Notes: generated from the sequence alone by a model not told the origin. A DNA stretch of 64,000 nt from Vitrella brassicaformis CCMP3155 (GCA_001179505.1 CDMY01000386.1:26371-90370); one strand, 5' to 3'. Shown: positions 16,498 through 25,317, counted from the first letter of the stretch. Program-made: numbers and translations.

Positions 16498-16812
16498 CGC
16501 CCGGTCACACACATCAGCCAAGATCGCATGATCGTGCTTGTGGGGCTAGTGGTCCAATCAGCACATGTACGAAGCGAGTGACCGGTTGACGAAAAAGAAA
16601 AGGAGGAGAAGGGCAGCAAGGAACACCCCCCCACACCCACATATATGGAAGAGGAGCATACAAACCACGTACATGCCCTCACACCCACATGCAGACCAGC
16701 CAAGAGGGGAAGCAACGATATATACGGTGCAGATGCCTACGTATACGCGACAAATCCATCCACCTCCATCCACACACACGCAATGGACGGATGGGCTGTG
16801 TGGTGTGAGAGA

Positions 16813-16897
16813 GACAGGCAGCTCGCTATCACTTCAGGCTGGGCCGCTCCCGCCAAGGGATTGCGCAGCCGTCAGCCGTCACTCGCGGCCCCCTGTC
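16813..16897 (-). promoter_or_regulatory. SECIS element 1 (proximal, GUGA/GA type)
   Basis: Minus strand: GACAGG-GGGCCGCGA-GUGAC-GGCUG-AC-GGCUGC-GC-AA-U-CCC-UUGGC-GGG-A-GCGGCC-CAGCC-UGAA-...-CCUGUC. Form-2 SECIS geometry, about 250 nt downstream of the TAG of a gene carrying an in-frame UGA. Confidence 0.88.
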
Positions 16898-17129
16898 TAC
16901 GCTCACACGCACATATGGCAGCAGACATCACATAGCATGTTGTCTATGTGAGTGAGTGGATGGGGTGTTGGGAGGTCGAGGTCAGATACAGAGATGCAGC
17001 AACGACGCAGCGAATGTATACCTTCCCACTGGCCTAAACTCATTCATTAGAAACGTACAAAAGCACACATGGCCCACCGTGTGCGGCCAGCAGCAGCTAT
17101 GGCCTGTCTATATGAGTCGGTCTGCCTGT

Positions 17130-18974
17130 CTATGCGGTGATGACATTGTTCCGTAGGAAGGCATTGATATCCATCGACTCGTACAGAACGCCGCCGTCGG
17201 GCAGACCCAAAGCAGGCACCTGACTCACACACACACACACACGCACGCACCGGCGTTGCACATGTGAGTGTAACAGCACAGCACCTCCCACCTGTGTGAG
17301 TCCGCCCCTCTGTTTGAGTTGGTCCTTCTGCGACGGGTCGGCCTTGACGTCCACCAGCGGCAGCATCCCCTGCAGCCCCAAAGCACTCAGCTGGTCCAGC
17401 ACATGGACGCAGAAGGGACACTGGGGCATGTAGAAGAGGCAGTAGCCCTCCTTCGACAGATCCTGCACACACGCAGCCAGCCAACCAACACACACACACA
17501 GACACACACACACAATCATCTCTTTCACTGTGTCGGTTCTGTGTGTGTCATCCCACTGCCCACCGTGGCGTTGACGTGCTTCATGTTTTCGACAAGCGGT
17601 GCGGGCGGCGCGTCCTTGCGAGAGGCCTTGACCTCGCTGATGTAGTCGCGGCCCGTCTGCTTGCCCATCCACTGCAGCACGGCGTCAAACGAGTAGTCGA
17701 ATGGACCAGGCCCACCTGCACCAACGACGTACACACCGCACACACACCCATTCCCCCTTCATAAGTGTGTTTGTTTCCTCGATCTCTGGCCGACCGATGA
17801 ATGCCAAAGTGCCATCGGGTTTGAGGACCATGAGGCGGTCGAGCCAGGCGGCGTAGGCCACGCAGGCCTCGTCGTCCGAGCCGTCGATGAGCAGCTCGCC
17901 AGTGACGCCCTTGCCGGCGAAGAAGTCCACCGCCAGCTTGGTCCGCTCGGCGAGGCTCGTGGTCTTCTTGACCCTCAGATTCCCATACACCGCCCACTCA
18001 TCAGTCGGGTGGGCCTCCTGTGGCCACACACACAGACATGGAGAGATGGCCGCAGCCGTCACCCACAACCTCTGCTGGTGTGTGGTGTGTGGTGTTGGTT
18101 ACCCTCATGTAGATGGTGACGAACTTGGCGTCGTCCTTGAACAGCTGTTGGGCGACCATCAGGTCGTCCATAACAGCCGCAAACTGACATGCCAATCAAT
18201 CAAGACACACACACAGGGGGAGAGAGGCATGGATGGAGCCACTCTCAAGCAAACCGAGGAGGCGGATCGATCTCCTCTCTCTCGTGGCACTTACCGGGGG
18301 TCAGCTGCAGCTGCCGAAGTTGAGCACCAGGAACTTGGTGGCGTCGAGGAAGTCGTAGATGTGACGCTTCTCACCCTCAGTCGTGTACACCACACAATTG
18401 GGCGCCTTGCGGCCCTCTCTCAGGGTCCAGCGGCCACGCCTCCACACACAACACACCCAAACAGTGTCCGTCTCTCTCCCTCTCTCTCTCTCTCTCTCTG
18501 TGCCCACCTGTGAAGGCGCACATAGATCCAGATGCGGTGGTAGAAGGCGGGATTGGTCAGAGTGTGCCACATGGTCTCGCTGAGGTCATGTCGCAGCGGG
18601 TTGGGCTTCTCGGCGCCCAGCTCTCCGACGCCTTGTCGGTTGGTCATCGGGCCGGGCAGCCCGGTGACCTTGACGCCCAGCGCTCGCGAAGTGGGAGCAT
18701 CCGGCTTTGTCGAAGCAGGAGCCTCCTTCCAGCCGAGCAGTCCCTTGATGAAACCCATAACGCACTTGAGAATGTAGCCCTGACAGCAGACAGACAAGGC
18801 ACACACACCAACAAGCATGCATCTCATCCTCCCAATGGATGCTGCTGATCAGCTCAGAGACGTCGCCGACGGACTGACCTGTGTCAAGAAGCCGACCATA
18901 AAGGCAAACCTGATGACGTCCAATGGCAGGTACGCCACCTCCCACAGCTGCTCTGACACCGACGACGCCCTCAT
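17130..18974 (-). CDS. Selenocysteine-containing iodothyronine deiodinase homologue fused to a C-terminal CPFC glutaredoxin/GST-N domain (about 409 aa, Sec at about residue 169)
   Basis: Exons 18974-18879, 18779-18508, 18439-18295, 18183-18103, 18017-17795, 17715-17564, 17462-17292, 17219-17130 give one continuous frame with TGA at 18303-18301. Motifs: APNCVVYTTEG..IYDFL..LVLNFGSCS-U-PPF, FVTIYMREAHPTDEW, AYAAWLDRLMVL..FIGGPGPFDY, then LFYMPQCPFC...GGLTQVPAL..DGGVLYESMDI. Hydrophobic N-terminus; SECIS elements downstream. Confidence 0.92.
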
Positions 18975-19197
18975 TTTGTGTGAAGGAAGATCAGCACAGC
19001 AGTCGACGGCCTTCATTCATGCAGACCGCCGACCACCAGATCCAGGCGCTTGCCGACGCCTCTCCGATCCCGCTGGCTACCGAAAGAATGGATGAATTGA
19101 AAGTCCTCCTTCTCTTGGAGCTAAGCTCGCAAGCGCCCAAGTTCGCAGCCCGCTCTGCACACAACTCATTGATTTTCGACGGAAAGGCCAGCTCGCG

Positions 19198-20393
19198 ATG
19201 ATAGCGGCGATTGACGTGCTGTCAGCTCACACGCTGCGGATCGGTGCCATTCTCGAACTGACCGGCGTGATCTTCCTCCACTCGCTGTTTCTCACGGGAT
19301 GCACCTCGCCTCTCTTCGATGTGTATGCGGCGTCCATGACGGGCCAGCCAGTCGATGACTACGAGGAGAAAATGAAGGCCGCCATTGCAGCGGTTCGCCA
19401 TTGGAGCCTGCCTTCCCTCTATGGGCAGGTGCCGTGGATGACGGGCGCCCTGTTCATTCTCGGCTTCCAGGTGAGCATTCCACTGCAAACAGAGCGGAGG
19501 TGAGCTGTGTGTGTGTGTGTGTGTGTGCGTGTCGCGTCAACAGGTGAAGCTCACTGCAGACCCCTGGCTGTCCTCTCGGCATCGTCTGTTTCGGCTGGGA
19601 ATCGGAGTGCTGCAGATCGGTGCCTTCCTGGACGTCACCTGGAACCTCGTCAACCTGGCAGAGTGGTGAGCTTGCAGACGAGCAGAGCCCCTCGATCGAG
19701 GGTGGCACGTGTCCTGTGTTCGTGTGTCTGTGTGTGTGTGCAGGGTGATTGCCGTCAACTATGTGAAGGCCTCCGATGCAACCATTACTGCACTCATAGA
19801 GGGAGGGTTCTTCTGGTGGCCCGAGATGCTCTATGTGTCCTTCCTCTCGCTGGCGGTGCTGGTGAGTAAGGGAGAGGGGGAGAGGGGGGGACGGACAGCT
19901 CATGGTGCAGTGCAGTGCACACCACAGCGCTGTTTGTCTGGTGTGTGCGTATGTTGTTGTGCGTGTAGCTGTATGGCGTGTCGTTCATGCTGCTGGATGT
20001 GCACCATCCGGAGGGCGGCAGCACCTGCCTGGCCTGGACCCTCCTCGTCTCGTGGACACTCACAGGCACCACCGGTACACACACACACCACACAAGACGC
20101 ATGGTCGATTGTGCCTGTCTGTCTGTCTGCCTGACATCCACGGGATGTGTGTCCATTCAGCCTTTCTCCGTCTGCTGGTGCCGCCCTCCCTGGCGGCGCT
20201 GAGCGTTGTCGTGGCCATCGACACAGCCTGGCCTCTCTTTCTCATTTTATCTCTCGTCCTCACTGTCGTCTGGTCTTTCCTATTCGAGCCGGCCGTCAAC
20301 AGAGGTATATACGCTGAGGCTGGTGGTGCTGATGACTATGGGCCAGAGCATACCCCCCCAAGGCACTGCTGGGCCGCCATACGCCGCATATGA
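19198..20393 (+). CDS. Multi-pass membrane protein of unknown function
   Basis: About 5 exons with several hydrophobic helices (GAILELTGVIFLHSLFL, WMTGALFILGFQ, LGIGVLQIGAFLDV, WPEMLYVSFLSLAVL, WPLFLILSLVLTVVWSFLF) and canonical GT-AG introns. Confidence 0.7.
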
Positions 20394-22937: not shown

Positions 22938-25317
22938 ATGGATGTGCATCAGGTGAGCCAGCAGCCGTGAGCAACGATCTGATGATTCTCCTCGTTGCTT
23001 CGCTACTCTGTGTGTGTGTGCAGGTCAGGGAGGATACGCGAGCAGTTGAACAGGGCCTGCGGCACCTGCAGGAGCTCAACACAGCGGTGCGCCTGCCTGC
23101 CTGCACAGAACAAGTCGTCGACTCTCTCTCTGCGTATGTGTCTTCCCTGCAGCTCGGCGCGTTGCGGTCTCACTTTGAGCAAGCGCAGCCTCCCAGTCTC
23201 ACTGCACAGGTACGTCACACACACTGCCGCATCGCTCGTGGAGTTTCCGTCTTTCGCAGGCGCCGTCGGCCAGCTCATTGGAGCTCCATGTGCAGCATGC
23301 CCTCGTCAGCTCCCACATCGCCACAGCACAGTCGCAGCTCACCCGCACACATGAGGACGTGTCGCGGGTGGTGGATGCACTCAAACCGATCCTGGCGGCC
23401 GCACCCAATCCCGCCACTCAGGATGATGCCGAGGTGCGCACAGCAGATGGCGACAGCACGACACTCTCTCTGTGTGTTAATCGCTGGTTCTTGTTGCTCT
23501 GTGTTTTGCAGGCCTCTGCAGTGAAGCGCCCGTCATTTCGTCTGACCCATCGAAGCGGCAACCCTCCACCTGTGAATGTGAATCAAGGACCGGTCAGACC
23601 GACACCATGACAGATCTGATACATCGAATCCTCTTGACCTTACTCTGATGTCATGTTGATTGTCACATCAGGCCCGTCGTCGGCTGTCGCGTGATGAGCT
23701 CTCCAACGTGTTCGGCCACCTGCAGCACTGGGAGCTGACGCGCCACCGCCGGCGTCTCGGCACGCCCCTCTTCCATCAGTCGGCCGCCAACTACACCCAC
23801 CTGGTCATCGACTGTGAGGACGACACGGCGCGGCGCATGTGGGAGACCATGCCGCTGGCCGTGGCCCAGAGATGGGGGCAGAGGGCGACCAACGTCCGAG
23901 TGATCAAACACCGCTACCCCAAGTGGCATGATCTATGGTGCCGCGGGACCTGGGCGGCATTAGTGGAAGGTCATGCGAGGGGCCGGGCGGCCATCGCAGA
24001 CAAGAAACGACGAGAGAGGGAGGGAGGGGAGGGGGCAGCTGCTGCGGTGGCGCAAGACGATTACGGCCCCAGATCAGCTGCTCGCGTTGTGGAACGCGTG
24101 GTCGACTGGACGCGTCATCAGTCGGCTGACGAGGGCACACTAGAGGTGCTGTCATTCGAGGCCGTCGAGCTCGATGACAGCATTGACATCCCCCACCCGC
24201 TCCCCTCATCTGATCTGCCGCCCGCCCCCTGCGTCCCGATCCCCATCCACCTGCCGGCACTCAAGACAGCCAACAGCATCCCGGGATACCTTGTGATGGC
24301 TCCTCAACGTCGCAACTGGCATATGCCCGCTCTCAGGGTCCTCACCATCGGAGAGCTGCCGGGAGGCGATGCCGGGTCGGTATGGCTGACGCACTGTAAA
24401 GCGATTGAGGTGCTGGACTTCAACGCCACTGGCTCTTATTCTGGTGCGTTTGTGGCCGACCTGCCGAGTGCGCTGCCGGCCGGATGCGGAGCACTCGAGG
24501 CGCTCCACACTCTGCGAGGCATCGCACTGCCGGCCTCCCCCGCCGACATCGACAAGCTGCGTGAGGTGATGGTGGCGAGGGGCGCCAGGCGGTCCATTCG
24601 CAACCTTCAGTTCATCTGGAACCATTGTGTGGTTGACACTGACAACACTGTGCAGCAGCTGAGGAAAATCGCGGAACTCAGGTGGGTCGGGACGGACCAG
24701 GCAGGCAGACAGACAGGACCGTGTATGTATGTACTTCATGTGACTGTGGTCGTCTGTTTGTGCTGTTTCGTCAGGGACGCAGTGGCTGATCCCGCTGCCA
24801 TGTCGGAGCCACTTGTTTGCGGCAACATGGGGTATGGGGGTCTCGCCATGGAGCTCCTCTCGCGCAGCAGCGACCACGTGTTCCAGAACGTCATCGCCGT
24901 GTTCGCCAAGACCATCACGACCGTGACCTACTGCGGGCGTACCGAGGCCACCCCTGCATCGATCACGGACGACACCTTCCCCGCCGCCCACACCCTGCAG
25001 CTGCAAGACGATGCCCTCCCCAGTGAGGCCAAGAAGAAGAGGGCGGTCGAGATCGCCTCCCACATGGCCAACCTGCAGCGCATCGAGGCAGACGCCCATG
25101 TGGCTGTCAGTGAGGTGTGGCGTTTCGTTGCACGGCTGCAGCGGGCGCGGATTGGCAGAGGGCGAGAGGGCGGCCTGACGGTGCATTTGATGGTGAATTT
25201 TTACACACTGCTCGGCCACGTGCCTGCTTGCTTCTGTCTGGGGGGGCGGTCCGTCGAACAGCTGCGGGGCGTTGAGAAGATTGAAATCGATATCTGGGGT
25301 GAGGGATCTTCAACAGG

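Follow-up and report, generated by a model that had tools for sequence, protein, structure and literature searches.

The minus strand of positions 17130-18974 in a stretch of DNA from Vitrella brassicaformis CCMP3155 (GCA_001179505.1, CDMY01000386.1:26371-90370) very probably contains an eight-exon nuclear gene for a deiodinase-like selenoprotein. The whole stretch of 64,000 nucleotides is referred to as the window, and positions are counted from its first letter. The in-frame TGA at 18303-18301 (residue 162 of the predicted protein, or 169 if an upstream splice acceptor is used) is, with high confidence, a genuine selenocysteine (Sec) codon. The predicted product of 402 or 409 residues has a mass of approximately 45 kDa, in agreement with the value given in an initial annotation of this DNA. 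Its hydrophobic N-terminus is followed by a deiodinase-like domain with a thioredoxin fold (PF00837) and, at the C-terminus, by a glutaredoxin with a CPFC motif. Judged by its sequence, the gene belongs to the deiodinase-like (DIO) family of algae, Dictyostelium and marine bacteria.

The initial annotation placed the TGA within FGSCS-U-PP|FAA, and this description is exact. The minus strand reads ctc aac ttc ggc agc tgc agc TGA ccc ccg|gtaagt, with the GT of the donor at 18294-18293, and the following exon opens at 18183 with ttt gcg gct (F A A) behind an acceptor ending in atgtcag. The modelled junction that retains the TGA over 18295-18330 runs from ...TGACCCCCG to TTTGCGGCT, and is given also as ...AGCTGACCCCCG to TTTGCGGCT. 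The open reading frame (ORF) track was said to stop at this point, as it does: the mechanical ORF 18301..18570 (-) terminates at the TGA.

The gene model was read from the minus-strand sequence and every homology search was run exon by exon. The PF00837 (T4_deiodinase) profile flanks the TGA, with the 38 residues before it (18304-18417) scoring 33.9 bits over profile positions 75-112 and exon C, which encodes the second half of the domain, scoring 28.6 bits over positions 144-209. Each piece passes the gathering cut-off of 27 bits alone, and the search of the genome is concordant. The 30 residues between the two pieces, made up of U, PP and the 27 residues of one exon, span the gap in the profile colinearly. 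Among solved structures, both pieces have their best match in the catalytic domain of mouse Dio3 (4tr3). Exon A, which carries the TGA, aligns to residues 18-56 of that structure and ends at ...LVLNFGSCT, while exon C aligns from residue 87 (EAHPSDGW). The spacing from the Sec site to EAH is 29 residues both in the Vitrella gene and in Dio3. As exon A stops at 56, exon C starts at 87 and the spacing is equal, the TGA corresponds to chain residue 57 of 4tr3. The motif suggests that this residue is Sec170, the residue named as the selenocysteine of Dio3 (PMC9141512), so that the TGA falls at the catalytic Sec position of the enzyme. The Ser of FGS, the proximal Cys at position -2 and the Glu-Ala-His of EAHPTDEW are all present and align to Dio3. 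In human DIO1, glutathione reduces the selenenyl-sulfide formed by the proximal Cys (PMC9141512).

Relatives elsewhere carry either TGA or Cys at this position, an alternation that the initial annotation had suggested looking for. At E<=1e-3, the exon C profile recovers 572 proteins from a set of 1.84 billion representatives, and the residue at the site was tallied for the nearest 150 of these. Cys occupies it in 18 (e.g., FGSCT-C-PPF), Trp in 7, as expected for a TGA translated under a Trp code, Ser in 4 and Arg in 1. Approximately 110 of the 150 start within about 35 residues upstream of EAH; these shortened relatives are gene calls that restart just past the site. At the DNA level, two adjacent PF00837 calls on a Logan contig make one frame through LVLNFGSCT-TGA-PPF, and a metagenome contig reads VVNFGSCS-TGA-PPF.

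Within the Vitrella assembly (72.7 Mb, 1064 contigs), the PF00837 search finds four loci: the present gene on contig C386 and one each on C638, C255 and C768. The C638 locus is a 3.1-kb duplicate of window positions 16766-19867, with approximately 90% nucleotide and 95% protein identity, and retains FGSCS-TGA-PP. A haplotig was considered for this copy and rejected, as the homology is confined to the 3.1 kb around the gene; since the flanks are non-homologous, C638 is a paralogue. The C255 locus (106990-107860, minus strand) is a divergent deiodinase-like gene with FGSVT-TGA-PP, in which EVFPEPGW replaces EAHPxDxW so that the conserved His is absent, and it is without a glutaredoxin domain. 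At C768 (11190-11288), a 96-nt intron interrupts the putative Sec codon, and the sequence reads FGSCS-TG|gttagt...ctgtgcag|A-GGT-CCG-TTC. The splice is predicted from its consensus sites only; the spliced message would carry UGA at the site, with GPF after it and the 29-residue spacing to EAHPTDGW. Scans for in-frame TGA in genomic DNA would miss this gene, because its UGA arises only upon splicing. C768 shares the deiodinase and glutaredoxin architecture of the present gene, with CKFC as the glutaredoxin motif.

These loci bear on whether the TGA could be a nonsense change or a misassembled TGC or TGT, the locus then being either a pseudogene or of the Cys type. One base is all that distinguishes TGA from the Cys codons. 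Against this, three independent loci have TGA and the fourth a split TG|A, and the exons downstream are free of indels and extra stops and more conserved than the introns. Between the present gene and C638, the exons before the TGA show 1.9% mismatches and no indels, and the exons after it show 3.1% mismatches with each exon gapless. Divergence is greater in the introns (7.9% mismatches, 65 gap columns) and in the 5′ flank (10.6% mismatches, 38 gap columns). Splice sites, TGA and terminal TAG are kept in both copies. The codons of the motif vary synonymously among the loci (ggc/ggg/gga, tgc/tgt, agc/tcc), which indicates protein-coding selection right up to the TGA. A nonsense mutation or assembly error is, on this evidence, an almost negligible prospect. 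The preference of the initial annotation for Sec recoding is borne out by the PF00837 homology on both sides, the Dio3 column, the UGAs of the paralogues and the hairpins resembling a selenocysteine insertion sequence (SECIS) that follow the gene.

Two such SECIS-like hairpins lie on the minus strand beyond the stop codon. Hairpin 1 (16900-16811) has its GUGA core approximately 250 nt past the stop, and hairpin 2 (16500-16411), a diverged copy of hairpin 1 with 82% identity to it, has its core at approximately 650 nt. Both have G-UGA-C on the 5′ side and (U/C)-GA-(A/U) on the 3′ side of the core, a helix II of 5+6 bp with a 2-nt bulge, and GCAA with an unpaired AA in the internal loop; the mini-stem makes them type II. 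Hairpin 1 has a minimum free energy of -47.5 kcal/mol (z -3.5) and is conserved in C638. The present gene is a single-UGA gene with two SECIS-like hairpins, only the first of which falls inside the duplicated 3.1-kb block; C638 has one hairpin.

A descriptor consisting of the (A/G)UGA...GA quartet, a helix II of about 9-13 bp, an unpaired AA and helix I matches only hairpins 1 and 2 on both strands of the whole window (128 kb). At each paralogue it gives exactly one match past the stop, with GUGA at C638 and C768 and a canonical AUGA type II element approximately 75 nt past the stop at C255; the sensitivity of the descriptor is known only for the deiodinase-like gene family. A covariance model (R1) built from the three close copies of the hairpin recovers only those three in the 72.7-Mb genome, and the hairpin is therefore no dispersed repeat. 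This model is too sequence-specific for the C255 and C768 elements or for other SECIS elements of the genome. An alignment of all five hairpins by MAFFT was rejected as structurally wrong.

Other selenoprotein families were examined as positive controls for the descriptor. The sole exon-wise match to the Rdx family (SelW/T/H-like), at C104:163717-164091 (-), is a Cys form with CVGC, and the two TGAs within it fall in apparent introns. The stretch examined at the GPx locus on C296 contained neither an in-frame TGA nor a SECIS, and PF10961 (SelK) had no match in the exon-wise search of the genome.

The initial annotation had also named the Sec machinery as a point to check, and tRNA-Sec, SepSecS and SelD are all found in the genome. 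The tRNA-Sec match reaches 71.6 bits (gathering score 47), and ARAGORN calls it tRNA-SeC with the anticodon TCA. SepSecS is represented by six colinear exons on C544 that score over the cut-off, and SelD by four colinear exon matches on C464, each under the cut-off for the whole protein. The presence of these components speaks against read-through of the UGA by a near-cognate tRNA that inserts Cys, Trp or Arg. UGA followed by C is a weak context for termination and would favour such read-through. The SECIS-like hairpins, however, accompany every UGA-containing deiodinase-like gene found in Vitrella, and the family is known to carry Sec or Cys at this site. Near-cognate decoding is therefore regarded as highly improbable, and decoding as Sec is preferred.

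Several observations weigh against the Sec assignment and have to be set beside this evidence. The unconstrained fold of hairpin 2 is no better than that of shuffled sequences, although the SECIS core, helix II and AA are retained. The descriptor was composed after the elements had been seen. The Rfam SECIS models have no match at the gathering score or at E<=10 in the window, the 3′ region or the paralogue loci, and the scans gave only chance microRNA-like matches on GT repeats. These models likewise miss the canonical AUGA element of C255, and the failure reads as low sensitivity for protist elements, but it is still a failed test. The SECIS case rests on architecture, position and recurrence, without a match to a curated model. 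The candidate for eEFSec, a single exon on C473, scores 106.6 bits with selB against 96.3 with eIF2-gamma, and PSTK (TIGR03575) has no match in the exon-by-exon search of the genome. The codons that differ between the present gene and C638 comprise 9 synonymous and 14 non-synonymous changes; this gives a rough ratio of non-synonymous to synonymous rates moderately below 1, which suggests moderate purifying selection between the two copies. Lastly, the deposited model of the C638 paralogue (P0001, 398 amino acids) joins ...DATKFL to FAAVMDD... through a cryptic donor (ctg|gtgctc) and loses VLNFGSCS-U-PP.

This deposited model raises the question of whether the mature mRNA of the present gene bypasses the TGA in the same manner. 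Use of the cryptic donor, 33 nt upstream, would leave a protein with neither a catalytic loop nor Sec. The model comes from a 95%-identical paralogue and has exactly this junction, in frame. The 11 residues lost are, however, the most conserved motif of the family, and all four Vitrella loci preserve it in the protein while its codons vary synonymously. This bypass is not available to C768, whose public model (P0002) is simply cut short, beginning downstream of the Sec site. Gene predictors commonly route around an in-frame TGA, and a bypass would leave the SECIS-like hairpins without purpose. Splicing that skips the TGA is therefore judged very unlikely, and retention of the Sec codon is the favoured reading. 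The junction of P0001 is instead an instance of the mis-splicing by standard annotation that the initial annotation had foreseen. P0001 carries the UniRef name "GST N-terminal domain-containing protein". Because the deposited models omit the motif or start past it, database users see a "GST N-terminal domain protein" rather than a selenoenzyme.

By analogy with DIO1 and DIO3, a mechanism can be proposed for the predicted enzyme. Decoding of the UGA as Sec would be directed by one or both of the GUGA type II hairpins in the 3′ untranslated region. Insertion would use the tRNA-Sec machinery of the genome and would place Sec in FGS-C-S-U-PPF. The selenolate might then attack the substrate, which may be a halogenated phenol or else an oxidant. 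The proximal Cys at position -2 would resolve the oxidised selenium to a selenenyl-sulfide, and the fused glutaredoxin, together with glutathione, would reduce it back. The insertion of Sec itself, the nature of the substrate and a part for the glutaredoxin in recycling are all inferred. Thyroid hormones are not expected in an alga, and the substrate of the Vitrella enzyme probably differs from those of the animal enzymes.

Two diverged Vitrella lineages retain the fusion of a Sec-deiodinase-like domain, with its proximal Cys, to a glutaredoxin, one lineage with CPFC (C386 and C638) and the other with CKFC (C768). The two parts also sit in one protein in the public models P0001 and P0002. Glutathione and GRX1 support the turnover of DIO1 in vitro, and the mechanism of re-reduction has been described as unclarified (PMC9141512); for this reason the fusion is the most interesting aspect of the gene. 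It may be a "Rosetta stone", in which the glutaredoxin/glutathione system natively recycles the oxidised selenium of deiodinase-type enzymes, a reading held tentatively and at somewhat less than even chances. The same small family would also stand out by its tandem SECIS pair and by the interruption of the C768 Sec codon by an intron. The fused glutaredoxin offers a testable hint on how deiodinase-type enzymes are re-reduced. No further protein that combines the two domains was present among the exon C profile matches or in a word-based protein search with P0001, which returned only P0001 itself. Such a fusion is also not among the algal selenoprotein fusions listed in PMC7539508.

The Vitrella gene shares several features with vertebrate DIO1-3, of which mouse Dio3 (4tr3) and Dio2 (9h48) have solved structures. 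These are PF00837, FGSC(T/S)-U-PPF with the UGA in the same column, the Cys two residues before Sec, EAHPxDxW 29 residues after Sec, GGPGPF near the end of the domain, a hydrophobic N-terminus and a 3′ SECIS, SECIS-like in the present case. The aligned pieces, in contrast, have only about 30-40% identity (E 0.002 and 0.29 against the PDB), and Ser rather than Thr precedes Sec in Vitrella. Vitrella further adds the C-terminal glutaredoxin, which the animal enzymes lack, and has two SECIS-like hairpins with a GUGA core instead of AUGA.

A closer setting is provided by the DIO proteins of algae, Dictyostelium and marine bacteria, which are likewise non-animal PF00837 proteins with Sec or Cys at the same site. 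The type II SECIS with a mini-stem is shared with Dictyostelium, and the G before the quartet with Ostreococcus. In Ostreococcus tauri, a G preceding the SECIS quartet is the rule and long mini-stems are reported; a long mini-stem is also reported for the deiodinase-like gene of Dictyostelium, where a selenoprotein of this family is documented (PMC2375036). The algal DIO family consists of approximately 80% Sec forms (PMC7539508), and marine bacteria have deiodinase-family proteins in both Sec and Cys forms (PMC1088965). Chromerids fall outside the coverage of these surveys (PMC7539508, PMC2375036, PMC1088965), and no paper on chromerid selenoproteins was found in the literature searched.

As deiodinase selenoproteins of algae and protists are already known, the value of the present gene lies mainly in the correction of annotation, with the C-terminal glutaredoxin fusion, its less ordinary feature, as a secondary lead. 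The gene also adds to the evidence that a free-living photosynthetic relative of the apicomplexan parasites retains a working Sec system, one predicted to support at least four deiodinase-like selenoprotein genes.

The eight exons are separated by GT-AG introns of 72-111 nt that are rich in (GA)n and (GT)n. Exon 1 (18974-18879) begins with the ATG at 18974-18972, comprises 32 codons of the hydrophobic N-terminus and ends at a GT donor at 18878-18877; it is also used in P0001, with 97% identity by tblastn. Exon 2 (18779-18508) comprises 90 codons and 2 bases (phase 2) between an acceptor ending in ctgtcag and the donor ag|gtgggc, and is 99% identical to P0001 by tblastn. Together these two exons encode a hydrophobic stretch of approximately 30 residues, a candidate for the N-terminal membrane anchor of the deiodinase family. 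Exon A (18418-18295) contains the catalytic motif NFGSCS-U-PP. It has two in-frame acceptors 21 nt apart, ...gtggag|g at 18440/18439 and ...ccctgag|a at 18419/18418. The upstream acceptor, with exon A starting from 18439, adds seven residues and is the one chosen by P0001 for the paralogue.

Exon B (18183-18103) has 27 codons (FAAVMDD...TIYMR) and is spliced identically in P0001. Exon C (18017-17795), from EAHPTDEW... to ...AFI, encodes the second half of the deiodinase domain. Exon D (17715-17564), starting GGPGPFDY..., encodes the end of this domain and a linker, and the junction AFI-G-GPGPFDY matches P0001. The glutaredoxin with its CxxC site, CPFC, is found in exon E (17462-17292), which scores 28.7 bits with PF00462 against a cut-off of 22.9 and joins its predecessor at ...NAT|DLSKEGY as in P0001. 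Exon F (17219-17130) encodes the end of the glutaredoxin/GST_N-like domain and matches the end of GST_N_2 (E 0.007); its junction also matches P0001, and the stop codon TAG is at 17132-17130.

Two further observations concern the assembly rather than the gene. Contig C467 (28277-68420; 61578-62495) has several tRNA-like matches and an intron-less frame of 420 amino acids resembling EF-Tu/selB, and looks like organellar (plastid) DNA within the assembly. In the window, positions 23530-24067 hold a repeat of approximately 500 bp that is 87-92% identical to at least four copies on C638; it is dispersed and unrelated to the duplication of the gene.

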